A stretch of DNA of 64,000 nucleotides from Paragordius varius (taxonomy: Eukaryota > Animalia > Nematomorpha). Location of the stretch: NCBI GenBank assembly GCA_964247055.1, contig OZ176052.1, positions 9,176,001 to 9,240,000 on the forward strand, written 5' to 3'. Within the stretch, counting starts at the first letter, position 1. Each line of letters starts with the position of its first letter. The notes under the pieces were generated by a model that was not told the origin of the DNA, did no database searches, and saw only the letters and a list, made by a program, of their open reading frames with translations. The translations under genes were made by a program, and so were the position numbers. Shown here piece after piece: positions 2,755 to 58,619 of the stretch.

Positions 2755-4934
2755 TAGACTTTATATTGTTAAAGATTTACTTTTTTTCGTTAATTGGGTA
2801 TTAATATTTGGTAGAATATAAAAACAAGAGCAATATGGTATTACCATATCATATTCTTTAAAAAAGTAAAATATAAGTGTGGGGGAAGGGCGTCGGAAAT
2901 ATTTAGTAAAAAATGAAAATCTTAAAATATTGTTATAGGGGAATGGTATAATATTTTTGTTAATCTTTTAGCAAATTTTATATGTTGATTTTTTTTAAAT
3001 TTATTTCGCACTACACATATGAAAGAGGATTGACGTGAGAATTAACATAATTAATTTGATGAATATTTTGTATGTTAAATTTTAAGAATATTACAGCAAT
3101 TTATGTTAACATTTGAAATATTGTTGTTACGTATTTAGATGCGGAATTTTGTGGGTTTTTATCTTTAATAATTTAATAAATAGTAAAATGGTTATTTTAT
3201 TATTATTTAGGATTCATAATTAAATTCAATAATTACTATTTTTCAACATGATAAATACCTGTATTAATCGAAATTGGTATTATTATTTTAAATAGTTGTT
3301 ATTAGTAATTAAAATACAGGTTATATATTTGTGAAAATTTAGTTAGATTATAGGTTGGTTTTGTTTTTATGTTTTTCATGGTTAATTTTTATGTGTTTAC
3401 ATTTTAATCAAGTAAAAATTGCGGTTTTTAAATTTAGTCAAATTTAATTTTTTTGTTTTTTATTTAACATTGTTAATTGTAATTAATTACTACATATTTT
3501 AAACATTTTAATAAATACAGGTGAAAATTGTGGTTTTTAATAAATTTAGTTAAATTGAATTTTTTTGTTTTTTAGGATTTGCATTGTTAATTGTAATTAA
3601 TTATTACATATTGGAAATTTTAAAAATACAGGTAAAAATTGCGGTTTTTAACAAATTTCAAATTTTTTTTTTCATTGTTAATTGTAATTCCGCAATTTTT
3701 ACCTGATTAAAATGTAAACACATAAAAATTAACCATGAAAAACATAAAAACAAAACCAATCTATAATCTAATTAAATTTTCACAAATATATAACCTGTAT
3801 TTTAATTACTAATAACAACTATTTAAAATAATATAATTTCGATTAATACAGGTATTTATCATGTTGAAAAATAGTAATTATTGAATTTAATTATGAATCC
3901 TAAATAATATAAAAATACCCATTTTACTATTTATTAAATTAATAAAGATAAAAACCCACAAAATTCCGCATCTATATACGTAACAACAATATTTCAAATG
4001 TTAACATAAATTGCTGTAATATTCTTAAAATTTAACATACAAAATATTAATCAAATTAACACTTCGATTCAAATTGGGGTATCTAAATACCCCAGACTAA
4101 ATTTAAATTAAATTTTTTAAAAAACTACTGAAGGAAACGGTCCCAATTTAAATTTATGCTTCTATCCTGATAAATATTATATAAATATGCCAAAATATCT
4201 TGATAAAATTTAGTTTTGAAAAAAAAGTTCCACCTCAAACTACTTCGACGCCATTTTTATTTTACAAAAAATTTGCAAAATATCGTCTTCCTTTAATTTT
4301 AAGGGTAAAACTAAAGCTTATATTTTATAATTATTACATCTAACATTAATAGAAATAGAAAAAGCGGTTTATTTTGTATTATTTTTTAATTTTACAATTT
4401 GACACATGTCATTGACTAAATTTTTACCTTTCAGTTTTAGCTCAAAATAAGTAATATCAAGTATTTTTGAATAAATTTTTTTATATATTTCGGTCTATTA
4501 ATGTTATATAGGTGCAAAATTTTGCCATGGTTTCGATTGCTTCCATACTTTTTAAACTATTTGATTTTAAACAGGCCTGGGGTATCCAACTACCCCAATT
4601 TGAATCAAAGGACTAAAATGAGTGTGTTGTATCCAAGTGTTAATTATGTTAATTCTCACGTCAATCCTCTTTCATATGTGTAGTACGAAATAAATTTTTA
4701 AAAATCAACATATAAAATTTGCTAAAAAATTAAAAAAAATATTACCATTCCCCTATAACTATTTTAAGATTTTCATTTTTTACTAAATATTTCCGACGCC
4801 CTTCCCCCACACTTATTTTACTTTTTTAAAGAATATGATATGGTAATACCATATTGCTCTTGTTTTTATATTCTTTACCTAATATTAATACCCAATTAAC
4901 GAAAAAAAGTAAATCTTTAACAATATAAAGTCTA
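2755..4934. mobile_element. Foldback/long inverted repeat: arms 2755-3424 and 3690-4934 (right arm interrupted by a MITE), spacer of ~3 x 110-bp tandem repeats
   Basis: TAGACTTTATATTG at 2755 pairs with CAATATAAAGTCTA ending 4934, and the arms stay complementary through to AAAAATTGCGG (3424) / CCGCAATTTTT (3690). Spacer units GTAAAAATTGCGGTTTTTAA...CATTGTTAATTGTAATT start at ~3412, 3520 and 3631. Confidence 0.9.
4060..4639 (+). mobile_element. piggyBac-like MITE, family A (580 bp), TTAA TSD
   Basis: TTAA(4056-4059)-CACTTCGATTCAAATTGGGGTA ... TACCCCAATTTGAATC-spacer-CAAGTG-TTAA(4640-4643). The sister arm of the foldback has a single TTAA at the equivalent site (~3051), i.e. the empty site. 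Confidence 0.9.
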
Positions 4935-5206: not shown

Positions 5207-6094
5207 ATGATACCAATGTGTTGTAATTTATGTAAGGTTCCTTATCAATTCCCTTTAAATCAATCAATACCTTTTAGACCGCTAACTTCATCCAATCCTA
5301 ATTCCCCTGTAACTAAAAGTGATAATGATAATAATAGTTCACCCATATCCCCACAAAATCCTAATAATAATCAAATGGATAATATGCAAGCTATTTCCAC
5401 ATCCAACCTTGATCCACCAAATAATTGTAACTCAAATTCAAACAACAATTTGTCTCCAACATATAAACCGTCAGGCGATTCAGAAAGTAATGCTGGTAGT
5501 TCCGATAATCATATCAATAATCGTAATCGGGATAATGGAAATATCAATCGTAGAAATGTCATGAATGATGACAATATTTATGATTCAAATTACGAATCAT
5601 TTGACCGTGGTGGTAGATGTGGTCAGCACAAACAAAGTTTGGATGAAGGTTTATGCGAAAGTATTATACGGCAAAAAATGTTACAAGATGAGGAAAAATA
5701 CAATTGTCATACATCTCTAGGAACGAAACAAGGTAATAACAAAAACCGTAGACGAAAATCCATATATGAGAAGCAGAGATCAAGCAGTAGTAGTAGCTCA
5801 GAATCGTCAACAAGCGACGAAAAAACGGAATCATACAAAACAACAGCATTTAAAACATCATCACCATCTAAGGATAATATTTTGGTGGATAAAGAATTGA
5901 TTATTAAAACTTTAAAGTTATACGAAGTTTTACAGAGTGAACTATTTTGTGTAATAGAATTAATAAAGCACAAACATTATACAGGAGAAATGGAAGCTAT
6001 ATTGTCAGCTACTGGTCAACAGCTTTACCGAACGATGCCAATACATATAATTCTTTTTTTAACATTTGTTATTTTAGGTATCATATATAATTGA
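5207..6094 (+). CDS. Unknown protein, 295 aa: N/D/S-rich low-complexity N-terminus, helical segment, hydrophobic C-terminal tail (possibly tail-anchored)
   Basis: An 888-nt ORF in AT-rich DNA with protein-like composition, ending IHIILFLTFVILGIIYN. No family recognised; start and last codons are uncertain. Confidence 0.7.
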   Translation: MIPMCCNLCKVPYQFPLNQSIPFRPLTSSNPNSPVTKSDNDNNSSPISPQNPNNNQMDNMQAISTSNLDPPNNCNSNSNNNLSPTYKPSGDSESNAGSSDNHINNRNRDNGNINRRNVMNDDNIYDSNYESFDRGGRCGQHKQSLDEGLCESIIRQKMLQDEEKYNCHTSLGTKQGNNKNRRRKSIYEKQRSSSSSSSESSTSDEKTESYKTTAFKTSSPSKDNILVDKELIIKTLKLYEVLQSELFCVIELIKHKHYTGEMEAILSATGQQLYRTMPIHIILFLTFVILGIIYN

Positions 6095-7196: not shown

Positions 7197-10100
7197 TTAA
7201 TATTGGTGATTGATAATTACATCTTTTATTTTCTTCAAAAACCCATCTCGAATTCGTGAAAATTCCATAATATCACGAGGTTTCTCAGCAATCCAGTAAA
7301 AATGAAATGATATCATCATTTGACCTAATAATGTAAAAAGCAGTTACTTTACTTACAACTATTTATCACGACATAAAATAAAAGTAATCGGATAATAAAA
7401 GTAAAGTCAAATTTATTTTAACTTCTAAAATTTTTAAAAGTTATGCTGTAATCTCCTTAATATATGAAGGACAATTTTCACATATATTGATAATTATTGT
7501 TCCACTCGAACCAAGAATGGTATTCTTGTTTTAACCCTTTCTTCGGTGGTTAATTATTTTTATTTAATTTTAAAATACAATCGTTGTAAGTGAATAAAAC
7601 TTAAAATTCCCTATAGCCTAATTTTATTCAATTGAAATGGTTTATATAATGGCCGCAAAAGAATGCCACTGCTTTTTACCCGACTTACTATAGTATTTAA
7701 ACCCAGACTAATATCTATGTATAAAACAATTATTTTGTAATACACCATCATCTATCCATAATATTTTAACGGAAAATAAGCTTTACGCTTATTTTTACAG
7801 TTTTCCACCCAAATGATGCTTGACCCAGAACCCGCAATAGAGCTGGACGAGCAAATATAAAACTATTATCAATTTAAATTCGAAGTGTTGGTTCAGAAAT
7901 TCGGTTTATAGCCATATTTATCCGCATTACTATCAAAGTGAAAACTTCATCGTTAAAAATAAGGCTATCAGATAATTCGAATAATAAAATGATACATAAA
8001 CATTAAACGATCCTATACCAGATCTCGTCAATCATTACCGATTTACCTATGAAAAGCGTCAACAACTAGAATGTAATTTAGATAACCGCCATTTTGTTCA
8101 TCTGACATTGAACGACAAAATAGAAGTTGATTCCGCCAAAAACTAGCGTTTTATTATCATTCCGTAGGGCCGAATTATGGTCTGAAAATAAACATTTGCG
8201 GCACACATTGCCATCACAAGGCTGTTGAAGGTTAGCGTTTGCTGGCAGAAACATATGGTGAACACTCTCTATCGATTCAATGAAATAAGATTTTAAAGTT
8301 ATAATTTCATATGAATGAGTGTGGGCGCTTTGGTAGACCAGACAACGGCTAAGACGCTAAAGTGGAAGAATTTGGATGATCCAACTATCATTGGAAGCAT
8401 TTCAATTAGAAAATACAATAAGTAGACACACACGAGCAATGGGAAATTCCAACAAACTAGTTAAATGGGTCTCATTCGAATGAACGTCAAAAAAACTGCG
8501 AAGAGATTCGTAAAATCCTGCTTCAACGTCAAGAAAGGAAAATAATTTTGCATTGACTTATAAGGTGATGAGAAGAACTTATTTTGTAAATTCAAAGCAG
8601 AGAAAATTGTGGCTTTCATCTTACCGACCGCTCCTTCAACACCAGGCGAAATCGCTTTGGCAAGAAGACGATGATCTTTGTCTGGTGAGACCAGAGGAGT
8701 ATCGTGTATTATGAACCTTTGAAACCCGATTGTTAGTACACAAGCTATCGCCAACAAATTATTAAATTGAACCATGCATTAATTAAAAAAACCGGACGAC
8801 ATATGGCAAAATGAAATCGCCACATTGCTTCGCCTCTATTAGCCAAAATAGTGTTAAAGTCGCTTTGATTGGAAATTCTATCGTATTCACCGCACCCTGA
8901 CCCGGCGCGCAAACTATTAACTCTAAGAACCAATGAAACACACGTCCGCACACCTTAATTTCGAAGACGTCGGAAAATCAATGAGTTTTTCAGGCATGGC
9001 ATTTATATATTAGAAGAGAGATGGGTGAAATATGTAGAAGACGATGGACAGTATTTAGAATAAAAATAATTGATATCCCTTAAAAATTACGTGTTTTTAC
9101 CAAGAAAAACGGGAAAGAGTCATGAATACACCGGGTACATAAGTATCTGGAATAAATATTCAATGTAAATTGCATTGCCAAGACGTGTTGCGATGAAATA
9201 AATAATTAATACATTTTAATTTGGTCAACAAAGTCCTCTTGACAGCCTCCCCGCGGTGCTGGCTAGGTCATGAAAATGCGCTAACGGCAAAGCCTAGTTT
9301 TTTTAATGATCTGTAAAATCATCAGCTGTGCAGAAGGGCATATGTTGCGTAAAAAATCACCTCAATAAACCATGAAATATGACCATTATAAAATTATTAC
9401 GTGGTAAGAAAACCCCGACGGAGCCCTGATCTTATACCTATCAACCTACATTTTAATTTACTTCTAAAAATGTAAAACATATGCTTACTAAAAATTTCAA
9501 AAAAATCCAATATGTCAGTATCGTGATAGAGTAACCGTTCATTTAAAACAAAATTCTGACTACAATTCAGCTTTGGTTCGATAATTGATAGTTGATAATA
9601 ATTATGTTTATGTGGAACGCGCACATTATAAAAATAATGTTTAAAAGTCCCATCCGCTATGAGATCTTTAAGCATAGAAGCCATGTTAATTCCGACTATT
9701 GCAAATGGATAGCTAAAGTAAAAAATAATTAGTAACAGTGTATAGTATAATATTTTTATTTTTCGGGGTTACAGTATAAAAATTTATAAAACTACAATTT
9801 CGTCATAATTTGACGGTTTAAAACTAAAAAATGTTTGGCATATAATGTTTTATATGTTTTTAGCGCAAAATATGTTTATAGTTTCCCAAAATCGTTCCCA
9901 AATATTTTTTCGTCACTTATTTTGTATCAAACAAATTCTAAACGAGCATTATATTTGATGATATTAATAGGGTATTATCTGAGAAATATAAATTACGTTT
10001 ATAAGCATCCGGTTTAAACACGGAAATTAATATAAAACCTTTTAAAATTAAAAAGCTTTTGCGTAAAAATTATTATGGTAAATTGATATGAAATCATCTG

Positions 10101-11482
10101 CTCACATGCTATCAATTTTTTATCTATTTGCCAATTGTACCTTTTTAACTAAATTTCTACTAAAAATATTTAATACCTTTCGTAAGACCATATTAGTAAA
10201 ATTTTATTTTTTTTTCTTTAAATTTTTAATATTCAACAATTAATTATATTGTAATTAAATATATGAACTTCATAGTAATACTATGACAATGCCTTACTTA
10301 GCTTAATTTTTACAAAAATTAATTTTAAAATAATATTAAACAATATAATTGAGGAATTTTTTACATAAAACAATTTTAAATTTATTGAAACAAAATGTTT
10401 ATTATGAAATTTAAAAATACGCATTTATCGTTAAATTATAAACTCTCAAAATTTTTGCCGCATTAGATTATTTTGTTGCATTTCTTAAAAATGTCATTTT
10501 ATATTGTATTTAAAGTCAAAAATATTCGATTTTAAGGATCAACTAACTTACCAGGTATTTTATATAAAATTTTTAGGTGTAATAGAGGAGGGTGTGCAAC
10601 TCAATGGCTTCACGGGCCGCATTAAAAAAATATATGGCATTAATACATATTTCATTACACTTCAAACATAAGAATGTTAAAAAAATAGCTAAATTATTGT
10701 AATTTGGAAAGAAGTATTAAATTTATTTAAGATTTATTAATTTTACTTAGACATGTATTTGATAGAAATTTCGCGCGGGCAGAACAAAATTTTGGGGGCC
10801 CCTGTAATAGAGGTTTTACAACTAAAAATCAATAACATAGTTAAAAAAATACCTTAGAGTAAATGTAAGTTTTATATTTGATTGCAATATTGATACCTAT
10901 AAACCCCATCATTTAAACCGTGTTCCACCATAATTCTGGATTCGGATTTATGAAATTCGGTAAAATAACTAAAATTAAGTATTATTTATACACTAAGGAA
11001 GCAAGGCCTAAAATGCCCATACCTCTTAAATCAGTGGTTGGATCATGGCCCTGAAAACCCAATAATTGCCAATCTTTGTGCTTAAGGGAGTGAAAAGTTT
11101 TTATGTGTCCTAAACAATTATTCCATAACTAATTATATAATTAAGTTACTTTTTTAAGCAAAGTTTGTTGGGATGTCCTTTCATCGTAGTTTACCTTACG
11201 AGAATATTCTACAATATCAATAAAATTGGAGTATGCATTTATTTGTGATGCAATATGCAATTTATTAATGTGTATATCAGCATCATATTCATATATGAGG
11301 TTAGTTTTCTCGCTTTTATAATAATCTTTAATTGACAAATTCTTACCTATATTTAATATTCGATTGTAATGTGTTTCATTTTTTATGCAAAGTCGTTCAA
11401 CGTGGTTTAATCCTGTTATTTTAACAAATAACCAATCGGTAATCCAACAATAAAAATCAAGTAAAATTTTTTTGAAAAACAT
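7197..11482 (-). CDS. ELMOD: ELMO domain-containing protein (ELMOD1/2-like Arf-family GAP), 5 coding exons, ~297 aa
   Basis: Exons 11482-11150, 11128-10992, 10968-10897, 9712-9489 and 7324-7197; all junctions are GT-AG and phase-compatible. Motifs: LWNNC...DWQLLGFQGHDPTTDLRGMGILGLASLVYF, YSYPFAIVGIN, FHFYWIAEKPRDIMEFSRIRDGF, matching the ELMO/CED-12 domain. Confidence 0.93.
8015..9135 (+). mobile_element. Degraded Mos1-like (mauritiana-type) mariner with transposase pseudogene, in the last ELMOD intron
   Basis: Frameshifted fragments ENKHLRH, RLLAETYGEHS, MG..KWVSFE (WVPHEL motif), NRFGKKTMIFVW*DQRSIVYYEPLKP and RW.KYVEDDGQYLE* (stop ~9062). TIRs are degenerate, so the ends are approximate. 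Confidence 0.9.
10588..10804. mobile_element. hAT (Charlie/MER1-like) MITE, 217 bp, 8-bp TSD, in ELMOD intron 3
   Basis: TAATAGAG at 10580-10587 and 10805-10812 flanks GAGGGTGTGC...GGGCCGCA...GGGGCCCCTG. Confidence 0.8.
10969..10991 (-). other. 23-nt GT-AG micro-intron in ELMOD
   Basis: gtataaataatacttaattttag. Removal gives LGLASLV-YFTEFH, collinear with ELMOD LGLxNLVYF; retention gives an immediate TAA. Confidence 0.9.
11129..11149 (-). other. 21-nt GT-AG micro-intron in ELMOD (3n, contains an in-frame stop)
   Basis: gtaacttaattatataattag. Removal gives TLLKK-LWNNCLG (ELMOD LLxKLW); retention reads GTA ACT TAA. Confidence 0.88.
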
Positions 11483-18328: not shown

Positions 18329-19240
18329 ATGACTGAAATTAATGAAACTACCAATGTTGCCAATACCAATGAGGTTGACAGTGCTGCACCAAAAAAGAAA
18401 GGTCCAGGTCCCAAATCGGCAATGAAGAAATCGACTAAACCAGCCAAGGCTGCACCAGTCAAACCAAGCGCTACAACAACCAATGAAATGCCAATGGAAA
18501 AACCCAAAACAATTACACCCAAGAAAATTGGCAAAAAGCCTGCTAATGGCGGAGCCCATCCACCCTATTCAGAAATGATTTGCAAGGCTATCGCTGCACT
18601 CCACGATAAATCTGGATCATCCAGACAAGCCATCACAAAATACATTATTGCCAACTATTCTTTGGGGGATGATATGAAAGCCATAAACCACCATGTTAAA
18701 ATGGCGCTAAAAAAGACAGTTACTGTTGGCAAAGTTAAACAGGTAAAAATAGCCTTCTTTTTAATTATATATATATATATATATATTATGCATAATATAT
18801 AAATTATATTTATGATTACCTGTTTAATTTTTTAGTCGAAAGGCCTTGGCGCTTCAGGTTCTTTCAAAATGGGCGAAGTCAAGGTTGAAAAGAAAATTAA
18901 AAAGGTCAAGACATCTAAAACAGCGGTCAAGCGAATGAAGAAGCCAAAAGTTGCTGGTACTCCGACAAAACCTAAGACCAAAACAGCCACTAAATCACCA
19001 ATGAAAAAAATGGTCCCTAAGGCCAAAAAACCAAAAACGACAAAATCGGTTGGAGCAAAGAAGCCAAAAATGGCAACAAAAAAGATGACACCCTCAGTCA
19101 ATGAAACCACGAAACCAATCACCAAAACTATCACAAACAAACCCACAGTTGTCAAAAAAGTTACCACAAAATCAAAGCCCATAATGAAAAAGCCAGCAGG
19201 TCCAAAATCAATTATGAAGAAGGTTAAAATGTCCAAATAA
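18329..19240 (+). CDS. H1: Linker histone H1, 2 exons, 272 aa
   Basis: Exons 18329-18742 and 18836-19240 with a 93-nt GT-AG intron. Globular domain HPPYSEMICKAIAALHDKSGSSRQAITKYI...VKQ-SKGLGASGSFK; K/P/T-rich tails. Confidence 0.95.
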
Positions 19241-21329
19241 AAATGTTCCAACTTCTCTTATAAATATGATTCTCATTATATTGCAAACCTAGAATAATTA
19301 ACACATGTTTGTATCTATAATATTCAATATTATACAAAAACCTAATATATTTATTCATATCATTTTAACAAAGTTATATCGCATTATACAATAAATACTC
19401 CCGTCCATAATTCTTTTATTCACCATATCTTTAATAATATCATGGTAGGGGTGCTACTTTACCAAATGAGACCATGTTGTTAAATTGCACCTCATATGAT
19501 TTGGCATTGTAACCAAAACGGTTTCAGTTTCATGCACGTTATTTTGTCTGAAACCCCCCAAGTTTTTTAACAAAGGATTAACGTTTGCTATTTGAATAAT
19601 GTAGTGCAGGTTGATTGATCGGCCAAATTGTTCTGATTTCGATTTAATGTTTAATTACGTTTCATTTAAATTATTTTGTTCAATATATACAATCTATAAA
19701 TTTCATTATGTAAATGCATTTATAACACTTGAAGCAGTGATACTCACGAGGCCCAAAAAAGTTTTTTAATGGCCCTGAATTATTTATAATTTTGGATGTA
19801 CTTATTTAGAGTATAAATATCTCCAAATTTGTCAAACAGCTTTCGAATTTTTACGGGTATTATGGCCCTTCATATATTTTGGTGAGTACCATTTATTTAT
19901 TAATTTAAAGTACAAAAAACTATGCAATATTTGTCGATATTATATTTGCAGGCCCTTACAAAAAATATGCCCTTCAAAATTTGTTGGTTGCTCGTGACTT
20001 ATCTGATTTTAAATGCTGCCTGCCGAACTTGTTATAAATTTAAAATTGCCACGTTAAGCTCAAAATTTTCATGGGTATATAAACTTAAAATCTGGTTGCT
20101 ACCTTTAGCAGAAAAAATATTAATTTGATTCATAATACAGCGATATACTCATCAAAATATTAAAAGGGTCGCAAAAAATTTCGTTTTAGACTATAATACC
20201 GATAAAATTTTCATAGCTGTTTGATGACACATTTACAGATATTTATTTATACTAAAAAAATATATATCAAAAAATGTAATAATTCAGGGACATAAGAAGC
20301 ACTTTTAGGCCATGGCCTAGGGCCAGAGCAAGGAAGAATATTTGGAGATGGGCTTCAATTTTAGCAATAAAAAAATTAAATTATATTAGATTATTGCAAG
20401 CGATATATTTTATAAAATGTAGCAAATTCAAACTGGAAAATTATTAATTTATTAATGCCTTTAACCATAATATACCTTTTTAACGGCCCCACAACGTGGG
20501 ACAATAGGGGTTTAAACAAACACAGGTACACAAAAATATCCTTAGGACAAGGGTGACCAACACGCCGCTCTCCGATATGTGCGACCCGCGAAAAATTTGG
20601 AAAATTACTAAAATAGGAAATCCATAGACAAATTTTATGAATAAGTTTTTTCAATTAGCAACGATTGGTCAATAGTTATTAAAATACACAATTTTTTGGC
20701 GACGTCACCTTTATAATTTATAACAAATTTTTATGAAGATCATTATTATTAGCCTACCACTGCAATAAGTCATAGCTTTTCATATCAAGCAATAATGGCT
20801 TTATGAAACGAAAATTTTAAGAGGTCTCACACTATGACACGTGGTAAACAATGTCTTCTTAAAATTTGTCTCATAAAACCACCAATTGCTTGATAGGAAG
20901 TTGACTTCTGATTGTGATTGTAGGCTAATAATAATAATATTATGTTGTTTTTAAATAGTATTGTGTTTTTTTCCATTTTTTTTCAGTTTAAATTTAAAAC
21001 TAATAATGATTAATGACCATATATTTGTCAAATACGGGCCGCCTGATTTTTTGAGAAAATGCGGTCCGCGAAGCCATTTCAGACAACTTTCCAGAAAACA
21101 TGCTGGCCCATGAAGAGAAAATTTGCAATCCATTATGAATGCGTAGTCTAGCGACTTCTTTAATAGCTTCTTTCACTCACTCGTTCTGTAAAATGTCATT
21201 TGGTTCAAAAACCAATACAATATACTATACATGAAGATATATTTGTTTTCCCTTGATTTGAGAATTACTAGGAAATAGTAAAATCAAATACAAAAGTTTT
21301 TTTTAATTTACTCGATCTTAATCCATATA

Positions 21330-22650
21330 TAATATTAATAATAAGGTATTGGCTTTAATAATATTTTTCAAAAACGGGTAGTCCCCGTCAAATTCAAAAG
21401 CGGAAAATTTGTATTGAATTATAAATCTGCCAACTATTGTCGAGGCATTTAATTGTAAAGCCCCACAACTTATGAAAACAGTTTTTAGAAACAGAGAAGT
21501 CCTTTGAGATAATAATCCCACAAACGTGAGATCCATTAAACTAGATATTGTTTTTTACTTTCTCACGAATTCGCCGAACATAGTGGCCACTTTTTGTGGA
21601 TTCTACACTCCCACCGTATGACATTTTTTTGCAAAAATTAAGTCTTAAATTTTTTAATTCCTCTGCAAGTCATGAGACTATAACAAGTCAATTGTAGGTA
21701 TTCTTAGTTTAAAGGCAAAAGTTTTGTCCCAACTCATTTTTAGTTGCCGTATAGGGCACCCTCAGTAGCGCCACTATATAAAAATAACGTGGCTTGGAGC
21801 TAATTTCCGCCTAACTTATGATATTAAATAAAATATATGATGTAGTTTTCCATTAAGCAAAATTTTGTTAGCACTTTTTAAATAAAAAACTAGTTAAGGT
21901 TCCATCTGTAATGCCTAATATAAAATAACCTGTTGAGACATTTCAAAGCCATAAGACCATATAATATCTAACAATGTTTTTAAGTCTTACCGTATTAAAG
22001 CAAAGATTTCAGCCAATGCTTTCTTTAATTTTCCAGAAATCCAACCTATGTATATTACGCTGTAATGATAACATGTTTTGAAACAATATCTCATCTTATA
22101 TTAAATGGTTAAGAGTTCCTCCTATTAAGGCATTTAGTTAAATGTTTTTTAAGATTAGCCACTAGTAAGGCTCCAATCTATCTAAAATACGCGAGAATAT
22201 AGGAATTGTTTGAAACAAAATCCCATCCGAGTTTAGATACTATGATAATGCATATTAAAGAAAAAATGTCATCTAGCGCGTTTCTCAAATCAGGTACCAG
22301 GTAAGACTCGACCGTCTCTAAAATACGCCACCAAGTAATAAAGTAGATTTAAAGCCAATTTTAGGAAAATATATGAGACCTTATGATTATAAAAATGGTC
22401 TTAGTTTCCTGTATAAAGACACGCCTTTTTAAAGTAGCCGCTGAGTAGAACCGATCTCCGTATAATAGCCCATTATTAAAAAATAACCCATAGTTATGAG
22501 ACTATATAAAAATAGTAATGTTGTAAGTTTTCGCCGTATAAAGGCAAAAAATTTATTTAGGCTCTCTTTGATCGACCCCTGGGTTCCCCTATATTAAGTA
22601 CGCCACCTTATAAAAAACGTAACTGTCAAGCAATACCATGTAATATCAAT
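21330..22650 (-). repeat. Older, diverged relative of the 310-bp-subunit element
   Basis: Shares CAAATTCAAA..GAAAA, CAGTTTTTAGAAACAG, CGCCGAACATAGT, GCCACTATATAAAA..CGTGGCTTGGAGCTAATTT and AAATACGCCA blocks with 25430-27620, in the same order. Confidence 0.65.
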
Positions 22651-23274
22651 GTTTATGTTAATTTGTATTGCGATTGAGCTACTCACCCTTTTAATTACTT
22701 TCTGTGTTTATCCATAATGTTTACAATAAGGTATAAATATATTTTATGTTAGGTATTTTTTTTATATTAACATAAATATAAATATTTTAAATTTAAAAAT
22801 TTAAATTATCAATTTTATAAGGGCCTAGTTTTGATCTTTTTTACAACTACCGATTTTCATTGATGTTGAATATTCCCGTTAACGCATGTCAATTTCTATA
22901 ATTATAAAAACTTAAAAATACAGCCAATTGGTATTTAACATAAAAGCCGACTCAAATAATAAATAAATGATAATATTGCAAAACACTATCAGTACGATAA
23001 CAATTTTATTTTTAGATAAGCTAGAAAATAGGTAAAAACAAGGTACTGTAACAATTTTATTTAGCCTTCTATACAATATTTTGCTTATCTGTATGTTTTT
23101 ATATATGATGCAATAGTAATCAAAGCTAAAAGGTAATAATAATACAAATTTTATAACAATATTTATATAAACACCCTGTATCAGGCCCAGCAAAATTGTA
23201 TATACATTCTCCAACCTAAAAAACTTAATGATTATCCATTATTTTTGATTTTTCGCTCTAGCTTTATTTTCATA

Positions 23275-26200
23275 ATGTTACATAATTTATACTATTTTTT
23301 CATGATAGTTTCTTTATCTATAAAATACAGTCAATGTCATCACGATCTTTTGCATTTATGCGAATATGATAATGTCAATGAATCATATTTTGAAATAGAT
23401 GAAATTCACCTAAAATATACCAACAATGCCCTGTCTACTGATATAAAATTTTTACTATCAAATGAAACAATTGGTATTGTGGCAGGATCTCCTATTGAAT
23501 CCATAAATAGATTAATAAATGATACCAAATGGATTAAAATCAATATTGATTGGGGCAGAGATCATGCTTGTGATCAACTCGAATTAAAATACAATACATC
23601 TGGTATATTTTACCAGTCCTTTAAAAATTATACGGTAAAAAATTTATTTATTTAAATTCAAATTATTTTATTTATTTTATGCATATTGGAGAGTTTAAAC
23701 TTTTTGCTAACACAACCCTATTTTGTGGGGAAAAAATTTAAAACTTCCTTGAAATAGGATTAAAATATATGATATATTTAAATTATAAACAGCGCACATT
23801 AAAAATATCTTGATGCATATTTATTCTGATAGATAAATATATAAGGTCTAATGGTGCCTTAAGTTTTGGGGCGAATGAAAGTTATTTATTGTATAATTGC
23901 TCAATATAGAATAGCAAAATTAACGATTTTATTAAATATTTTTTTGACCAATTGCTACATTCCAAATATCACTAAAATATATCATTTAAATAGATTAAAA
24001 GTGAGACAATATTTTTATAATTTTTTTTCGATAAAGCTGAACTACCTCATAATGATTAGTTTAGCTTACTTTTAAATTTGAGTAAGATTTTGTTTAAACC
24101 CAATGTATTTAAAAATGATGTAAAAGCAAGCCAACCTTTTATACAAAGTTCTGAGGTATCATGGAATTAAATATAAAAAGCGTTTTTATTATACTAAATC
24201 AGTTTTATATCGTTATACCATGCTTAATAAACAGAATTTCCTATAAATTAAATTTTTTACTATAATATCAATTTTTATTTTTATTTTTTTTTAAAATTTA
24301 CAATATATTTTAAAATTCTATTGCGCATTATCGGCATTTACATTGGTTTAACACTTGTTTGCAACACACTCACTTCAGTCCTTCAATTTAAATTGATTGG
24401 GGACCCCAAGCCTGTTTAAACTCAATATTTCTTAAAATATGGAACAAATTGAAATAATTGCAAACACACTTATATAAAATTGATGCACCGAAATAAAAAA
24501 GATTTAAAAAACTTATTACTCATTTTATGGATAAACCTCAAAATAAACATTTATTCAATATGCCATGTGTGCATTAACTAGATGTAAAAATAACGCAAAC
24601 CACTTCCTTTGTTTATATCAATTTTAGATGGAAAATTAGCTTTTATTTTAGCGTTAGAATCAAATAACACGATATTTTGCAAAAATGTTGTAAAATAAAA
24701 ATGGAGTCGAAATAGTTTAGTAAAAAACCTTTTTTAAAATGGCTTATTTTATAATTTTAATTAGGAGAGAACTATAAATTTAAATTGGAACCGTTTGGTT
24801 TTTAAAATATCTATTAGAGTCACTATCCCAATTTAAATCGAAGAGTTAGGAAATGTTGCCCACTTAAAAGGGTCCAAATCCACATCTATTTTTTTTCAAA
24901 AATAATTTTTCGATTTATCTATATGTTTTTATATATATAGTTAATGATATATTTTAATGAAATTGTTGGAAGCACTCATTATCAATTTTTTTAAAAATGT
25001 GGGCTAACTTTGCGATTTTTCGATATCGAACAATTACCACAAAAATGCAAATTAGTTTCTTATATCACCGTGAGCCCCGAACCATAATCATTAGGAGAAT
25101 CCTGATTTATCGATCAGAACATATATATTTTATTAAGATATTTTTTATAACCCTGATTTCGTGCATAGTGTAATCTATGGCTTTATCCATTTATATGATT
25201 CTATGGTCCAATCTTTTTGATTTTTTTATAAAATTGTGCAATGCTCAACTAGAAATCTTTGCAGACAAATTTGTGTTTTTCTATAATCAGATATCAATTA
25301 ACTGTATTTATTGGCACCGAATTCTATTATTATTAACAATCTGCGGTGTGCCTCAATTAGATTTTGGAAGCTATCATAATTTTAAACTGTATCAATCTAT
25401 AAATATAAAGCTTTTTTGTTTTGTTTATAAATCTATATTTTTATAAAAATGGAAAATGCTGACTTTGTGATCTGTTTTCGGTAAACCGGTATACCCATTC
25501 AAATTCAAATATCGAAAAAATATTATCATTAATGAATGCCCAGACAACAGCTTCGCCCTTTTTTTGAATTAGGCCCCGAGTTTCGGGCCCACCCCGTGTA
25601 AAAAACGGTTTTTTAGAAAACAGAAGTCCACAAAAATCGTGTCTTTGAGACAATTTTCCGGAGAACATGTTGGACCATTCAATTTCAAGTATTTTTTTAC
25701 CTATTTTCGATTGCGCCGAACATAGTCGGCTCGCTTTTTTAATTTAGGCCCACTTTTTACCCGCACCCCCCGTGAAAGGCCATTTTTTAAGTCCACAAAA
25801 ATAATTTTTTGAATCTATTTTTCGTCCAAGGTATAAGACCGTAAAAATTCAATAAGGATTCCAGGTATTCCCTTTTAAAAGGCAAAAATTTTAGTCAAGC
25901 GTTTCTTTAATAATAGCTGCTGGGTAAGGAGCTGCACGCGAAAAACTGACCCGTCATATCGAAATAGCGTGCTTTTGGGGCTAAATTTCAAAAAACCTAT
26001 CAGGCCATATGAATTAAATAACTGATTAAAGTATTACCCGTAAAACGTCAAAAATTTAAGTCGAGCGGATGTTTTAAATTAGCCGTTAATTAGGCCCTTC
26101 ACGTCCTAAAAAATGCGCCACCATAGAATAATTTTTTAATTTTGAGGCAATTTTTCCGAAAACTAATGAGAGCATATGAAATCAATTATGTACCAGGTAT

Positions 26201-28192
26201 TCTCCGTAAAAAGGCAAAATTTTAATCAAGCGCTTTTTTGTATCAGCCTCTGGGTAGCAGCCTACAACTGCGCGACCATATCAAAATTGCCTTGTTTAGG
26301 AGTTAATTTTCGGAAAACTTATCAGGCCATAGTTTTATAAGGGCATGAAATATTACCCGTAAAAAGGCAAAAATTTAAGTCGAGATTAGCCGTTAAATAG
26401 GCCCTTTACGCCCTAAAAAATGCCCTATCATTGAACTATTATTTAGTTTTGAAGCCATTCTTCCATAAACTATTAAAAGCATACGGAATGAATGATGATT
26501 CCAGGTTCCCATATAAAGGCAAAAATATTATCGAACGTCTTTTTGTTATTGGCCTCTGGGTAGGAAGCTACCCGCCTACAATTGCGCCACCATATCGATA
26601 CAATGTGACTTTGGAGACAAATTTTAGAAAACTTATCAGGCCATATGATTTCAATAAAGGCTTGAAATATTACCCGTAAAAAGCAAAAATTTAAGTAAAG
26701 CAGTTTTAAATTACCCCTTAATTAGGTCCTTGCCCCTAAAAATGCGCCACAATAGAATGACTTTTTGGTTTTGAGGCAATTTTTCGAAAATCCCACGAGA
26801 GCATATGAAATCAATTATGATACCAGGTATTACCCAAATTAAGGCAAAATATAATAATCGAGCGTTTTTTGTTTCGCCACTGGTTAGGGGGCTACCCGCG
26901 TTAAATTGCATCACCATATCGATACAGCATGCCTTTGGAGCCAAATCTCAGAAAACTTGTGAGGCTATGTGAATTCAATAAGGGCCTAAAATATTTATTA
27001 CCATTTATAAAACAAATATTTTAGTATTGGGGGTCTATTTTAATGAGTCGCTAAGAAAAGTTTTACGCCCTCGAAAATCGCCGCCATAGAACAATTTTTT
27101 GGTTTTGAAGCAATATTTCCAAGAACTTATAGGATATGGACATTGTAATTCCAGATGTTCCCCATATAAAGACAAAAGTTTGCCCGACGTTTTTTTATAC
27201 CTGCCTATCGGTTAGAAGCTACCCGCCAAAAACTGTGCCACTATATAAAAATTGCGTTATTTTGGAAGTAATTTAAAGCTTATTCCATATGAGCTCATTT
27301 AAGATTCGAAATATTACCCGTAACCAGGTAAAAAATAAGGTCAGGCCTTTTTTTATTAGCCGTTAATTTGGGGCTTTTATGCCCTAAAAATACGCCATCA
27401 TATAACGATTATTTTGTATTGAGATATTTTTTCGAACCCATGAGACGTGGTCTCAAAAATGACTCCAAATATAAAAATTTAACTTAGCGCTTTTTCCATA
27501 TAGGCCTATCGGTAAGGGTCTACCGGTTTAAAACTGAAGCGCCATACAAAAATGGCGTGGCTTTGGAGATAATTTTCAAAAAATTTTAGAAGCCATACGA
27601 GGTCAATAAAGGCTTATTTTACGCTAGTAACAAATATAAATAATTATTTTTAGCAAAAAACATCAAAAAATTCGGACTAGAGCTATTATTGCTCATATCG
27701 GTATTGTAATTGGCCTAAAAAGTATTTATTTACACATCAGTTAGCATTTGTATTTTTTTTATTTTTAACAATTTCAAAATCGTAGAAATAATACAGTTTC
27801 AATTAATATGTAACAAATAATTTTAAAAATCTCATACATGTTAACAAAGGTAGAAATCAAATACCCTTAGCCATTTAAAAGAATGACATGACCAATAAAA
27901 GCTTTGTAACTGTATTTTTTGTATTTTTAAATTTCTGGAATAGTAAAACACCAAAAATGTATTCTTATATAACAAAATTTTATGTAAATAAACTGTTGAA
28001 TCAAAAATACTTAAAATTTAAATTACGCTATAAGTTTTTATTTCCTATATTTTTTATATTTTATCTATATAGCATATATTTTTCGACAAGAAAAATACTA
28101 CCTCAGCCAAAATCAAAGGATCTGAAACTAAACAAAGCTGTTCGAAACAACTTGGCACAATAAATGTCGAAGTTATAAATTGCAACCATTAA
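23275..28192 (+). CDS. Orphan secreted glycoprotein, copy 1 (2-exon model, 159 aa)
   Basis: Exon 1 23275-23634 (signal peptide MLHNLYYFFMIVSLSIKYSQC, donor ACG|gtaaaa). Exon 2 28073-28192 (pyrimidine tract + ag, phase 0, HIFFDKKNTT...NCNH*). Six N-x-S/T sites. Confidence 0.65.
24352..24845 (-). mobile_element. piggyBac-like MITE family A, degenerate
   Basis: TTAA-CACTTGTTTGCAACACACTC... at 24348; the other end reads CCCAATTTAAATCGAAGAG-TTAG. Confidence 0.8.
25430..27620 (-). repeat. 310-bp-subunit element, six-subunit copy
   Basis: Subunit anchor TTTGG(A/G)G at ~25974, 26295, 26610, 26934, 27261 and 27562 (spacing ~300-327 bp). The distal boundary is approximate. Confidence 0.85.
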
Positions 28193-29549
28193 CCACAATA
28201 TATATATCTATAATATCAATTCAATAATCGATTTAGTGATCTACTAATTTAGCTTTAAATAAATAATGATTTTCTTTTACGAAATTTAATAAAGATTACC
28301 TATTAAACTCTTCCCCATCACTCATTATGATTTTGTTAAACTGTTTTTCAGGCTTAATAGTGGTTTATGATTGGAGCATGTACAAAGAAAATGTTCAAAC
28401 TAATTAAAAAATGCTGGGTTTTCACAAGAGGTTTGACACATTTACTATTTATACTAAAAAATAGACATTAAAAAATGTAATAAATAATTCAGGGACATAA
28501 AAAAGCAATTTTAGGCCACCTACGCCTAAGGTCATACCAAGGAGGAATATTTGGAGTTGAGCTATAAATAATCTTAGCAATAAAAAAATGAAATGTTAGA
28601 TTATTACAAGGGATATATTAAAAATGTAGGAAATCTAATAATTTATTGATGATTTAACCATACCTTTTTAATTTGGCCCCACAACGTGTGACAATAGGGG
28701 TTTAAATAAACACAGGTATCCAAAAATATGTTTATGACAAGGGTGTCCAACACGCTGCCTCCGATATATGCGACCCGCGAAAAATCTGAAATACCAAAAT
28801 AGAAAATCCATAGATAATTTTATGAATAAGTTTTTTTAATTAGTTACGTAAATTAGTGAAGCAAATAGTATTCATTAAAATACGCAATTTTTTGGCGACA
28901 CCATCTTTATATTTAATAACAAAATTATATGAATATCATTATTATTAGCCTACTATTGCAATTAGAAGTCATAGTACTTAATATCAAGCAATTGGTGGCT
29001 TTATGAAACGAAAATTTTAAGAGGACATCTCATACTATGACACGTGGTAAACACTGTTTTCTTTAGTGTTATAAAACCACCAATTGCTTGATATGAAACT
29101 ATAATTTCTAATTGTAATGGTAGGCTAATAATAATAATATTATGTTGTTTTTAAATAGTAATTATGATTTTTTCCATTTTTTTCAGTTTAAATTATAACT
29201 GATAATAATTAATGACGATATATTTGTCAAATACGGGCCGCCTGATTTTTTAAGAAAATGCGGTCCGCGAAGCCATTTCAGACAACTTTCCAGAAAACAT
29301 GCTGGGCTATGAAGAGAAAATTTTCAATCCAATATGAATGCGTAGTCTAGCGACTTTTTTTAATAGCTTCTTTCACTCAATCATTCTGTAAAATGTCATT
29401 CGATTCAAACCAATATACTATACATGAAGATTTATTTGTTTCTCTTGAAAATTTGAGAATTACTAGCCTTATGGAAATAGTAAAATCAAATACAAAAGTT
29501 TTTTTTAATTTACTCAATCTTAATCTATATATCATATTAATAATAAGGT

Positions 29550-30850
29550 ATTGGCTTTAATAACATTTTTCAAAGACGGGTAGTCCCCGTCAAATTCAAA
29601 AGCGGAAAATTTGTATTGAATTATAAATCTGCCAACTATTGTCGAGGCATTTAATTGTAAAGCCCCACAACTTATGAAACAGTTTTTAGAAACAGAGAAG
29701 TCCTGTTTTTGAGACAATAATCCCACAAACGTGAGATCCATTAAACTAGATATTGTTTTTTACTTTCTCACGAATTCGCCGAACATAGTGGCCACTTTTT
29801 GTGGATTCTACACTCCCACCGTATGACATTTTTTTGCAAAAATTAAGTCTTAAATTTTTTAATTCCTCTGCAAGTCATGAGACTATAACAAGTCAATTGT
29901 AGGTATTCTTAGTTTAAAGGCAAAAGTTTTGTCCCAACTCATTTTTAGTTGCCGTATAGGGCACCCTCAGTAGCGCCACTATATAAAAATAACGTGGCTT
30001 AGAGCTAATTTCCGCCTAACTTATGATATTAAATAAAATATATGATGTAGTTTTCCATTAAGCAAAATTTTGTTAGCACTTTTTAAATAAAAAACTAGTT
30101 AAGGTTCCATCTGTAATGCCTAATATAAAATAACCTGTTGAGACATTTCAAAGCCATAAGACCATATAATATCTAACAATGTTTTTAAGTCTTACCGTAT
30201 TAAAGCAAAGATTTCAGCCAATGCTTTCTTTAATTTTCCAGAAATCCAACCTATGTATAATACGCTGTAATGATAACGTGTTTTGAAACAATATCTCATC
30301 TTATATTATATTAAATGGTTAAAAGTTCCTCCTATTAAGGCATTTAGGTAAGTGTTTTTTAAAATTAGCCACTAGTAAGACTCCAATCTATCTAAAATAC
30401 GCGAGAATATAGGAATTGTTTGAAACAATATCCCATCCGAGTTTAGATACTATGATAATGCATATTAAAGAAAAAATGTCATCTAGCGCGTTTCTCAAAT
30501 CAGGTACCAGGTAAAACTCGACCGTCTCTAAAATACGCCACCAAATAAAGTAGATTTAAAGCCAATTTTAGGAAAATATATGAGACCTTATGATTATAAA
30601 AATGGTCTTAGTTTCCTGTATAAAGGCTACGCCTTTTTAAATTAGCCGCTGAGTAGAACCGATCTCCGTATAATAGCCCATTATTAAAAAATTACCCATA
30701 GTTATGAGAATATATTAAAATAATAATGTTGTAAGTTTTCGCCGTATAAAGGCGAAAAATTTAATTAAGCGCTCTTCGATCAACCCCTGGGTAGGATTCC
30801 CCTATATTAAGCACGCCATCTTATAAAAAACGTAACTGTCAAGCAATACC
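29550..30850 (-). repeat. Duplicate of the diverged subunit element at 21330-22650
   Basis: Near-identical to 21330-22650. Confidence 0.65.
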
Positions 30851-31422
30851 ATGTAATATCAATCATGGTTTATGTTAGTTTATATTGCGATTGAGCTACT
30901 CACCCTTTTAATTACTTTCTGTGTTTATCCATAATGTTTACAATAAGGTATAAATATATTTTATGTTGGGTATTTTTTTTATATTAACATAAATATAAAT
31001 ATTTTAAATTTAAAAATTTAAATTATCAATTTTATAAGGGCCTAGCTAGTTTTGATCTTTTTTACAACTGCCGATTTTCATTGATGTTGAATATTAACAT
31101 AAAAGCCGACTCAAATAATAAATAAATGAAAATATTGCAAAACACTATCAGTACGATAACAATTTTATTTTTGTATCAATAGGTAAAAACAAGGTACTGT
31201 AACAATTTTATTTAGCCTTCGATACAAAATTTTGCCTATCTGTATGTTTTTTATAGGATGCAATAGTAATCAAAGCTCAAAGATAATAATAATACAATTT
31301 TCATAACAATTTTTATATAAACACCCTGTATCAGGCCCAGCAATATATTTACAATCTCCCACCTATAAAAATTAATGATTATCCATTATTTTTGATTTTT
31401 CGCTCTAGCTTTATTTTTCATT

Positions 31423-34400
31423 ATGTTACAAAATTTATACTATTTTTTCATGATAGTTTCTTTATCTATAAAATACAGTCAATGTCATCACGATCTTTTG
31501 CATTTATGCGAATATGATAATGTCAATGAATCATATTTTGAAATAGATGAAATTCACCTAAAATATACCAACAATGCCCTGTCTACTGATATAAAATTTT
31601 TACTATCAAATGAAACAATTGGTATTGTCGCAGGATCTCCTATTGAATCCATAAATAGATTAATAAATGATACCAAATGGATAAAAATCAATATTGATTG
31701 GGGCAGAGATCATGCTTGTGATCAACTCGAATTAAAATACAATACATCTGGTATATTTTACCAGTCCTTTAAAAACTATACGGTAAAAAATTTATTTATT
31801 TAAATTCAAATTATTTTATTTATTTTATGCATATTGGAGAGTTTAAACTTTTTGCTAAAACAACCCTATTTTGTGGGGAAAAAATTTAAAACTTCCTTGA
31901 AATAGGATTAAAATATATGATATATTTAAATATAAACAGCTCACACTAAAAATATCCTAATGTATATTTATTCAGATAGATAAATATATCAGGTCTGATG
32001 GTGCTTTAAGTTTTGGGGGGAACGATATAAAGTTATTCATTGTATAATTGCTCGATATAGAATAGCAAAATTAACGATTTTGTTAACTATTTTTTTGTAA
32101 AAGGCAAATGCTACATTCCAAATATCACTAATATATCATTTACATAGATTAAAAGCTAGACAATATTTATGTAAATTTTTTTTCGATGAAGCTAAACATT
32201 CACCTCAGAATTTTGATTAAAAAATTAGCTTACTTACTTTTAAATTTAGTTTTGTTTAAAACCAATGTATTTAAAAATGATGTAAAAGCAAGCCAACCTT
32301 TTATACAAAGTTCTGAGGTATCATAGAATTAAATAAAAAAAGCGTTTTTATAATACTAAATCAGTTTTATACCGTTATACCATGTTTAATAAACAAAATT
32401 TCCTATAAGTTAAATTTTTAACTAAAATATCAATATTTATTTTAATTTTTTTAAAATTTAGAATTATTTTAAAATTCTATTGCTCATTATCGGCATTTAC
32501 ATTAATTTAACACTTGGATGCAACACACTCATTTCAGTCCTTCGATTCAAATTGAGGTATGGGGACCCCAAGCCTGTTTAACTCAATATTTCTAAAAATA
32601 TGGAACAAATTGAAATAATTGCAAACACACTTATATAAATTGATGCACCGATATAAAAAAGATTTGAAAAACTTATTACTCATTTTATGGATAAACCTCA
32701 AAATAAAAATTTATTCAATATGCCATGTGTGCATTAACTAGATATAAAAATAACGCAAACCACTTCCTTTGTTTATATCAATTATAGATGGCATTAAATA
32801 AAAAATTAGCTTTTATTTTAGCGTTAGAATCAAATAACACGATATTTTGCAAAAATGTTGTAAAATAAAAATGGAGTCGAAATAGTTTAGTAAAAAACCT
32901 TTTTTAAAATGGCTTATTTTATAATTTTAATTAGGAGAGAACTATAAATTTAAATTGGAACCGCTTGGTTTTTAAAATATCTATTAGAGTCACTATCCCA
33001 ATTTGAATCGAAGAGTTAGGAAATGTTGCCCACTTAAAAGGGTCCAAATCCACATCTACTTATTTTACAAAAATAATTTTTCGATTTATCTATATGTTTA
33101 TATATATAGTTAATGATATATTATAATAAAATTGTTGGAAGCACTCATTATCAATTTTTCTAAAAATGGGGGCTAACTTTGCGATTTTTCGATATCGAAC
33201 AATTACCTCAAAAATGCAAATTAGTTTCTTATATCACCGTGAGCCCCGAACCATAATCATTAGGAGAATCCTGATTTATCGATCAGAACATATATATTTT
33301 ATTAAGATATTTTTTATAACCCTGATTTCGTGCATAGTGTAATCTATGGCTTTATCCATTTATATGATTCTATGGTCCAATCTTTTTGATTTTTCTATAA
33401 AATTGTGCAATGCTCAACTAGAACTCTTTGCAGACAAATTTGTGTTTTTCTATAATCATATATCAATTAACTGTATATTTTGGCACCGAATTCTATTATT
33501 ATTAACAATCTGCGGTGTGCCTCAATTAGATTTTGGAAGCTATCATAATTTTAAACTGTATCAATCTATAAATATAAATGAATGCTTTTTTGTTATGTTT
33601 ATAAATCTATATATTTATAAAAATGGAAAATGCTGACTTTGTGATCTGTTTTCGGAAAACCGGTATACCCATTCAAATCCAAATATCGAAAAAATATAAT
33701 CATTAATGAATGCTGAGACAATAGCTTCGCCCTTTTTTTGAATTAGGCCCCGAGTTTCGGGCCCACCCCGTGTAAAAAACGGTTTTTTAAAACAGAAGTC
33801 CACAAAAATCGTGTCTTTGAGACAATTTTCCGGAGAACATGTTGGACCATTTAATTTCAAATTTTTGATTACTATTTTCGATTGCGCCGAACATAGTCGG
33901 CTCGCTTTTTTAATTTAGGCCCTCTTTTTTCCCGCACCCCCCGTAAAATGCCATTTTTTAAGTCCACAAAAATCGTGTTTTTGAGAGAATTTTCAGTAGA
34001 ACGTGTTGGACCATTCAATTTCAAATATGATTTTTGTTTACCTATTGTCGATTGCGCCGAACATAGTCGGCTCGTTTTTTAATTTAAGCCCTCTTTTTAC
34101 CCTCACCCCCCGTAAAATGCTATTTTTTAAGTCCACAAAAATAATTTTTTGAATCTATTTTTCGCCCAAGGTATGAGACCGTAAAAATTTAATAAGGATT
34201 CCAGGTATTACCTTTTAAAAGGCAAAAATTTTAGTCAAGCGTCTCTTTGATGATAGCCGCTGGGTAAGGAGCTACACTCGAAAAACTGATCCGTCATATC
34301 GAAATAGCGTGCTTTTGGGGCTAAATTTCAAAAAACCTATCAAGCCATATGAATTAAATAGCTGATTAAAGTATTACCCGTAAAAAGTCAAAAATTTAAG

Positions 34401-43900: not shown

Positions 43901-46019
43901 AATGAATATCTATCATATTAGATATCATTTATATATTTATTGTTGATTAATGATTATTACCTTGGCCTTTTAGGCGTATATTTTCAATCCCATATAACTA
44001 CTATGTATATAACTAACGAAATTTACATTACAAAACATCGATACATTTGCATTGTTGTATACATTTATAAAACAGTCACCTTTTCCGATTTTTATAATAT
44101 TCCAAAATTATAAACATTTGAAAAATTTAGTTGGGTGGCAGTATTTTTCTAATATCCCATTTTCTTTTTTAATGTCTATTGGTTTAATTTTATAAAATGA
44201 TTCCTAGTTAGAGCTTAAAATATCCTTTTGTTAGGTATAAACTGCAACTGGCTTTGATAAACGGCAAATAAATTGGATAGTTACTATTATATGAGATAAT
44301 GAGTTATCATTTAGTTCTCTATTGAAATTAATTTTTTCACGAATCCAAGAAATTAGTAATTCGTTTAATAAAAACGGAGTTTGTTTTAAGGAATATAGTG
44401 GACAGCTTATGACACGGGTATAAAAGATACTTATAAGGTTTCATGAGGAGAAATTTTTTAACTTAAACACATTTTATCGACAAGCTTTTTCCTATCAATC
44501 AATATGTTGGATATTTAGATTTTTTTGCATTTTTTCATACAAATTTAAAGACATTGGTTTTATTTCGTACATATTTAGTACTAGGAGCATATTTATCTTT
44601 TTAATTGTTTAAAATGAGAGGGAATTATTTTATCGGTTCTTTTATACGAAACTTTCTTAAAGCTGTTTTTAGTGTACCGAAACAACTACTGGTTTTAAAA
44701 CTTGAAAACCTCGTTTTTTATTTTTTAATATCTAAATAGTTGTTTTTTATTAATGAAAACATGATAAATTTTAAACAATGCCTATTTATTTAGTTACCCA
44801 TAGGCTAATGTATATGCAATAAAATGATAATTTTAATCATACGCCAAAATCATTTTTCATACCATTTTGGAAATCGTACGATTTAAAATGCCCCTTTTAA
44901 ATATGACATATTTTTGCAAAAAATATTTTATCAATACAATAAGTAATGGATTAGTTGCTAGCGAGTTCATATTCACAAATGCATGCCCTAAAAATATAAT
45001 TACCAAAAATATCAAACTAGATATGATAAATTATTAGATTCACTAGGTTTTACTGTAATTTGTTTTTATTATCATGGAGTTGTGGATACCACATTTCTAG
45101 AAAAATAATTATATTTTTTAACTTTTATAAAACAATTTAATATTTTTTGGTAACACAAAGTTTGTGGCGCAAAAACAGATACCATTTTTTAATATTATCC
45201 ATCCATAATATATAAGTATGTTTTGCATCTTTCCAAAAAATTTTATGCGTAAAGTCTAAATTTCATTGTAACCTAATATTTTGATGTGATTAACAAGTGT
45301 CGCCACAATAATTTTAATTGCATACATACATATATACATATACAGTAAAGAGTTTTAAATATTTTTCTCTTATAAATGTCTTTTTATTGGTGTATAAAGA
45401 AAGCACATCTACATATATGTATTATATAAATGACTAAAATTTGAATATTTTTTCTATACACCAATTAAAGGACAACCCTATTATAACCAATAGTATGACT
45501 CTTTTTTAGCAATATTTTTATTGCATTTTGCACATTTTTGTATGCTTATACACACAATGAAAAATCCAATAAGTCAGATTTTTTATCAGCAGCAAATGAA
45601 CGCACAATATAAACATATATAAATAGAGAACTGCCTATCGAGTTTTCAAGGTTTTTCTGTTGATGCCAAATTACTTTTATACTTCTTATTCTCTTAATGC
45701 ATTTTTTTTTTTCAGTATTTCATTTCCCTTATATGAAAAATAATATATTTTGGTGTGTAAATGGTAACTACAATATAATTTTGATTGCAATCGTTACGCA
45801 TTTAATATAGGCCCATCATTATTTTTTATTTATATCGATTTGGCAAATATATACCCATTTTTGTGTTACGGGTATTAATAGTGGTGAGTTGCTTGGGAAA
45901 ATTATAATTTCTTTTCTATATCGAAAGTTCTGATATAGTTGTAAAATTCGTAATTTATATATCATATAATTGGATGATTACAAAGCATTTGTTTTATATC
46001 CGAAACTATAATTATCGCT

Positions 46020-46050
<31 letters not shown>

Positions 46051-47989: not shown

Positions 47990-48021
<32 letters not shown>

Positions 48022-48649: not shown

Positions 48650-48680
<31 letters not shown>

Positions 48681-52576: not shown

Positions 52577-52614
<38 letters not shown>

Positions 52615-56505: not shown

Positions 56506-58619
<2,114 letters not shown>

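Follow-up and report, generated by a model that had tools for sequence, protein, structure and literature searches.

How introns of 21 and 23 nt come to lie in the same gene as introns of one to two kilobases is the question raised by an ELMOD-type gene in the window, i.e. the whole 64,000-nt stretch of Paragordius varius DNA analysed here, which is rich in repeats and has a GC content of about 27%. The gene lies on the minus strand (11482-7197), and its frame is open only after the excision of GT-AG segments of 21, 23, 1184, and 2164 nt, which leaves five coding exons and 297 codons with no internal stop (Table 1). The preliminary description had given the coordinates and lengths of the two small segments correctly, both being found on the minus strand, and its claim that their removal is needed for a gap-free ELMO domain is borne out by the five-exon model. 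Judged from the sequence, the two segments are very probably real ancestral introns.

Table 1. Positions of the features discussed in the text, in window coordinates
Feature	Position	Strand	Details
ELMOD coding exon 1	11150..11482	-	111 codons; aligns with the N-terminus of animal ELMOD orthologs; may contain an extra 21-nt intron
Candidate hidden GT-AG segment	11326..11346	-	21 nt, 3n, stop-free, phase 1; inside ELMOD exon 1
ELMOD intron 1	11129..11149	-	21 nt, phase 0, GT-AG; in-frame TAA and terminal TAG
ELMOD exon 2	10992..11128	-	Pfam ELMO_CED12 (exon alone), E 3.7e-12
ELMOD intron 2	10969..10991	-	23 nt, phase 2, GT-AG
ELMOD exon 3	10897..10968	-	72 nt; length equals that of the ortholog exon (23 columns between introns)
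ELMOD intron 3	9713..10896	-	1184 nt, phase 2, GT-AG
hAT-like MITE in intron 3	10580..10812 including TSDs; element 10588-10804	-	217 nt
ELMOD exon 4	9489..9712	-	carries an insertion of about 30 codons relative to orthologs
ELMOD intron 4	7325..9488	-	2164 nt, phase 1, GT-AG
Broken Mos1-like mariner transposase relic in intron 4	8461..9063 (left limit uncertain)	+	frameshifted
ELMOD exon 5 and stop codon	7197..7324	-	maps right after the last ancestral intron of orthologs
PP2A catalytic subunit intron 1	58489..58511	-	23 nt, phase 0; next exon begins at human PP2A residue 35
PP2A catalytic subunit intron 2	58253..58278	-	26 nt, phase 0; flanking exons map to human residues 35-104 and 105-162, gapless
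Inverted repeat pairs	3051-3424 with 3690-4059; 2755-3054 with 4640-4934		

The homology searches were run with single exons, and the joined frame was translated only locally, for stop counts and splice alternatives. Homologs were sought with exon 1, with reference proteins that align with exons 1 and 2, and with exon 2 among representative sequences, and eight ORFs of the window were looked up exactly; no protein from a hairworm or other close relative was retrieved. Exon 3 alone, whose sequence is too diverged, gave no BLAST match to orthologs. Introns 1 and 2 have a GC content of 13-14%, against 26-38% in the flanking exons. Retention of intron 1 places a stop at codon 114, and retention of intron 2 places one at codon 160.

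A comparison of intron positions with ELMOD orthologs had also been proposed in the preliminary description. For seven animal orthologs, the gene structure was derived from an exact spliced match between each protein and its own DNA, and the exons of the window were placed separately on the alignment. Because all four introns agree in position and phase with those of annelid, scorpion, and fish orthologs, they are taken to be ancestral. The position and phase (0) of intron 1 are shared with Trichuris (58 nt), Capitella (55 nt), Owenia (992 nt), Synchiropus (1945 nt), and Centruroides (2523 nt), and those of intron 2 (phase 2) with Capitella (52 nt), Brachionus (60 nt), Owenia (556 nt), Synchiropus (1470 nt), and Centruroides (4371 nt). 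Each of the two tiny introns thus has GT...AG ends and restores the frame at a site shared, in the same phase, with five orthologs, as expected of a U2-type spliceosomal intron. Exon 2 between them corresponds end to end to exactly one ancestral exon (135-178 in Synchiropus, 120-163 in Owenia). The position of intron 3 is ancestral as well (ortholog lengths 49, 68, 70, and 2892 nt), and so is that of intron 4 in six orthologs (50-1067 nt). Within the ortholog set, the intron at a given ELMOD site may be short or long, depending on the species.

ELMOD2-type ELMO-domain genes (Pfam PF04727) and the Paragordius gene have in common the domain, the size (297 aa), and the four ancestral intron positions. 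They differ in that the Paragordius gene lacks one or two upstream ancestral introns and has an exon 1 shorter by about 20 residues and an exon 4 longer by about 30. For the second upstream ancestral intron, a phase-2 intron in five orthologs, a GT donor is lacking here, and it appears to have been lost; the shortening by about 20 residues relative to orthologs falls in the region around its site (11150-11325, minus strand). The insertion of about 30 codons in exon 4, absent from the animal orthologs, lies at 9500-9620 (minus strand) in an open frame; a hidden intron within it was considered and judged unlikely, the donors being weak and no ancestral site being present.

The frame could also be kept open by longer, conventional introns that use neighbouring sites (e.g. 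11194-11129, 66 nt; 10991-10936, 56 nt) and leave a shortened protein. Such open-frame GT-AG pairs do exist, and 56-66 nt is a normal length for short animal introns. However, all other open-frame GT/GC..AG pairs near introns 1 and 2 are longer (56-132 nt) and delete at least 11 residues, and those inspected intrude on sequence alignable with the orthologs. The 66- and 56-nt pairs would delete 15 and 11 residues, respectively, that have counterparts in the orthologs, and would shift one boundary off the ancestral position. A further argument is provided by the PP2A catalytic subunit (PP2Ac) gene on the minus strand (58619-56506), the introns of which measure 23, 26, 59, 475, 202, and 393 nt. 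Its product is almost identical to the human protein in the exons tested, and when placed on the human protein, the exons around the 26-nt intron adjoin without a gap. The use of longer introns is accordingly considered highly improbable.

It is equally to be asked whether ELMOD is a decaying pseudogene, or whether the small segments are assembly errors. The protein has diverged, exon 1 showing a deletion and exon 4 an insertion, and no transcript was found: a search of sequencing runs revealed none with RNA of the gene, and two RNA-labelled runs gave no coverage of it at 80% likeness, which does not show it to be silent. Because these two runs did not cover the gene, its splicing is something that we infer. 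On the other side, 297 codons are open, and intact splice sites stand at the ancestral positions. In an independent DNA run, one contig spans 11041-11277 without a gap and with two substitutions, both outside the intron; the 21-nt intron is identical in the two samples, and therefore the segment is not an assembly error. The 23-nt intron is spanned by no single contig among those listed from this run. Four of the six coding substitutions in the independent sample are synonymous (two of three in exon 4), as expected for a working gene. Moreover, the highly conserved PP2Ac shows the same pattern. Decay or misassembly is thus regarded as extremely improbable, and the reading of the two segments as ancestral introns is retained.

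The intron sizes were collected for four genes of this one window, namely ELMOD, PP2Ac, a WD40 gene, of which the well-supported introns were counted, and a linker histone H1 gene (23 introns in all). The histone H1 gene (18329-19240, plus strand) is interrupted close to the end of its globular domain by an intron of 93 nt. The WD40 gene (40950-54010, plus strand; WDR26-like by our reading) carries long Asn/Ser-rich extensions; its 12 well-supported introns measure 119-3383 nt, none being tiny, and its middle exons (about 48900-50500) lie outside this set. The 23 introns comprise lengths of 21, 23, 23, and 26 nt and, after a gap, a continuous range of 59-3383 nt, with a median of 355 nt. The four tiny introns are each the first or second of their gene and lie 108-470 coding bases from the start. 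They are the first two introns in both ELMOD and PP2Ac, an arrangement with a post hoc chance of about 1/90. The 21- and 23-nt introns of ELMOD (by ortholog positions) and the 23- and 26-nt introns of PP2Ac (by protein contiguity only) fall into the ultra-short class (< 30 nt) of animal introns. The donors of the set are mostly GTA, with G at +5 in only six of 23, and the acceptors are TAG (18), CAG (4), and AAG (1). The long introns of the window keep T-rich acceptors. Candidate branch-point A's are present in the tiny introns, but they are expected by chance in such AT-rich sequence.

A length of 21 nt leaves scant room for U1, U2, and U2AF together. This, with the rarity of G at +5, would favor the view that the tiny introns need a modified spliceosome, in which U1/U6 pairing is altered and U2AF is replaced or bypassed, beyond a lower tolerance for size. 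Against such a need, the same machinery handles kilobase introns with T-rich acceptors here, and myxobolids with equally short introns keep both the branch pairing of U2 snRNA and the two U2AF subunits (PMC13644364). A modified spliceosome is therefore considered rather unlikely, and a major spliceosome that would tolerate about 21 nt between splice sites the most likely.

The preliminary description had called intron size strongly bimodal in a genome that is not compact. That bimodality is the surprise is not supported, because Capitella, Centruroides, Synchiropus, and Owenia, four of the orthologs compared, mix introns of 49-147 nt with kilobase introns in ELMOD, and two-class distributions of intron length have been published for teleosts (PMC9438311) and flatworms (PMC4040987). 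The neodermatan flatworm Gyrodactylus salaris resembles Paragordius in having a short class that dominates intron positions 1-2, beside introns of up to many kilobases (mean 659 nt), but its short mode lies at about 32 nt (PMC4040987), whereas the 21-26 nt of Paragordius fall under the 30-nt line. The unusual feature is the floor of 21-26 nt, in a minority class at the 5' ends of genes.

Introns below 30 nt have been proven in myxobolids and Dicyema (PMC13644364; PMC6736024). In a September 2026 survey of 51 animal genomes, they are recorded only in myxobolids and a dicyemid, and more cases are predicted (PMC13644364). The myxobolids and Dicyema japonicum are similar to Paragordius in that they have GT-AG introns which measure 20-27 nt and occupy positions conserved among animals, the donor being cut to about GTA (PMC13644364; PMC6736024). 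They differ in that the tiny class dominates in myxobolids (median 22-27 nt) and in Dicyema (mean 38 nt), whereas it makes up four of 23 introns, with a median of 355 nt, in the Paragordius window. An architecture of the myxobolid and dicyemid type, with a tiny majority and a median below 30 nt, was thus not found in this one window. Literature searches gave no report on hairworm intron sizes, the word "intron" being absent from two hairworm genome preprints. The Gordionus genome has 26.9% GC and 64% repeats (bioRxiv 2023.06.26.546503), to which the GC content and repeat richness of the window are similar.

The statement that the two long ELMOD introns carry a hAT MITE and a mariner is fair as to the labels, but the named elements fill just part of each intron. 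The hAT-like MITE of intron 3 has identical 8-bp target-site duplications (10580-10587 and 10805-10812); its ends, which begin CAGGGG and GAGGGT, match only in part and are imperfect hAT-like ends. The homology of the intron 4 relic to mariner transposase was found on short pieces, one of which matches Mos1 residues 317-345 (E 1e-4 to 3e-4, best 1.4e-4), while a second has matches to Mos1 only (E 0.13); a Pfam search of the short pieces gave no match. Neither terminal inverted repeats nor a TA duplication were found for this element, an old relic. In other runs, many partial contigs stack on introns 3 and 4, as expected for dispersed repeats.

Other repeats were observed in the window. Positions 20225-28427 and 28434-36813 form a tandem duplication of about 8.3 kb with 90-95% identity, each copy of which contains an ORF for a possibly secreted protein with no Pfam match (23245-23655 and 31423-31803). 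Both copies also carry an array of long degenerate repeats that recur at 1-1500 and 62870-64000. Positions 2755-4934 are occupied by nested inverted repeats, the arms of which are 300-370 nt long and 95-96% identical. At 5207-6094 (plus strand) lies an Asn/Ser-rich ORF of 295 codons with a CxxC-like start and a hydrophobic end, which may be an exon of a larger gene and for which no convincing Pfam match was found.

The argument of the preliminary description against general genome streamlining is reasonable, although it is not new, since Myxobolus provides a precedent. Myxobolus honghuensis has a genome of 206 Mb with 36-51% repeats and a mean intron of 507 bp (PMC8855578, bioRxiv 2024.02.09.579586), and it also has ultra-short introns (PMC13644364). 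Another Myxobolus genome measures 185 Mb with 68% repeats (bioRxiv 2024.02.09.579586). A repeat-rich genome is hence common to Paragordius and some myxobolids (PMC8855578; bioRxiv 2024.02.09.579586). Uniform genome shrinkage fails as an explanation here because the tiny introns coexist with transposon-bearing kilobase introns. The 185-Mb genome is presumably that of the species later named M. rasmusseni, in which the median intron is 22 nt.

The 21-nt intron is a multiple of three in length (3n) and contains an in-frame TAA, as the preliminary description had pointed out; it reads GTA ACT TAA TTA TAT AAT TAG, with two in-frame stops, one of which is the acceptor TAG. This is no evidence of the Paramecium pattern, however, because a stop occurs by chance in 70-86% of simulated 21-nt introns of the local composition in phase 0 (37-58% in phases 1-2). 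Paramecium uses one stop codon, TGA, and a stop is therefore informative there, whereas with three stop codons and a TAG acceptor it is the default here. Paramecium tiny introns are likewise about 21-26 nt long and AT-rich (PMC5014332), but Paramecium has tiny introns only, while Paragordius ELMOD mixes tiny and kilobase introns. In ciliates the bias of 3n introns toward stops is a statistical enrichment (PMC5014332), and a single intron is uninformative for this reason.

The window offers one firm case and one possible counter-example. The latter is the stop-free 3n segment at 11346-11326, which sits exactly at the position of a phase-1 intron of six orthologs. Its donor score of 8.3 exceeds that of 20 of the 23 real donors, and similar exonic positions are rare (2/1434). 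Its splicing yields Asp at a column with Glu in all 18 references; left unspliced, it yields Gly at that column, yet the next four residues then match better. The acceptor is the rare AAG, without a T tract. That the segment is a hidden third micro-intron is held to be somewhat less likely than not, its position otherwise being a coincidence after intron loss. Discovery based on reading frames misses stop-free 3n introns, and all lists obtained in that way are biased.

It may be added to the explanation preferred here that the tiny introns splice inefficiently and that selection keeps the 3n ones stop-bearing for nonsense-mediated decay (NMD), as in Paramecium. The two stops of intron 1 and the non-3n lengths of the remaining three firm tiny introns are in favor of this addition, as is the documentation of the pattern in ciliates (PMC5014332); the high frequency of chance stops and the stop-free candidate speak against it. 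The chances for and against it are taken to be about even.

The explanation preferred here, and held with high confidence, is that these are ordinary U2-type GT-AG introns of ancestral origin, for which the size floor was lowered to about 21 nt, some being trimmed and others grown by transposons. The introns would have been inherited from the animal ancestor, and the lower size limit for splicing would have fallen to about 21 nt in the lineage. Deletions would then have trimmed some introns, chiefly the first ones in a gene, to this floor. Further introns in these genes were probably enlarged by transposon insertion, for which a 21-nt intron would be a very small target. The tiny intron would be recognised as a unit by both of its ends (intron definition), an internal A would serve as the branch point, and closeness to the cap may help the 5' introns. 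Unspliced transcripts would be subject to decay by NMD, since retention gives stops at codons 114 and 160 of ELMOD.

The 21- and 23-nt introns thus belong to a known but rare kind, introns below 30 nt having been published for two other animal groups (PMC13644364; PMC6736024), and they probably mark a further animal lineage. A broader proposal is plausible, though somewhat short of an even chance: a third animal lineage, probably the hairworms, would splice introns below 30 nt as a separate, cap-proximal minority class, in genes of which the remaining introns are of ordinary size or swollen by transposons, its transcripts would switch from extreme intron definition near the cap to normal splicing, and stop-free 3n micro-introns would perhaps serve as optional in-frame segments. 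In the Paragordius varius genome, annotation with a default minimum intron length may yield faulty models at the 5' ends of genes. A lineage with introns of 21-26 nt and of several kilobases in one gene would permit within-gene tests of the minimum intron size, and also of the shaping of introns by cap distance and NMD under the standard genetic code.
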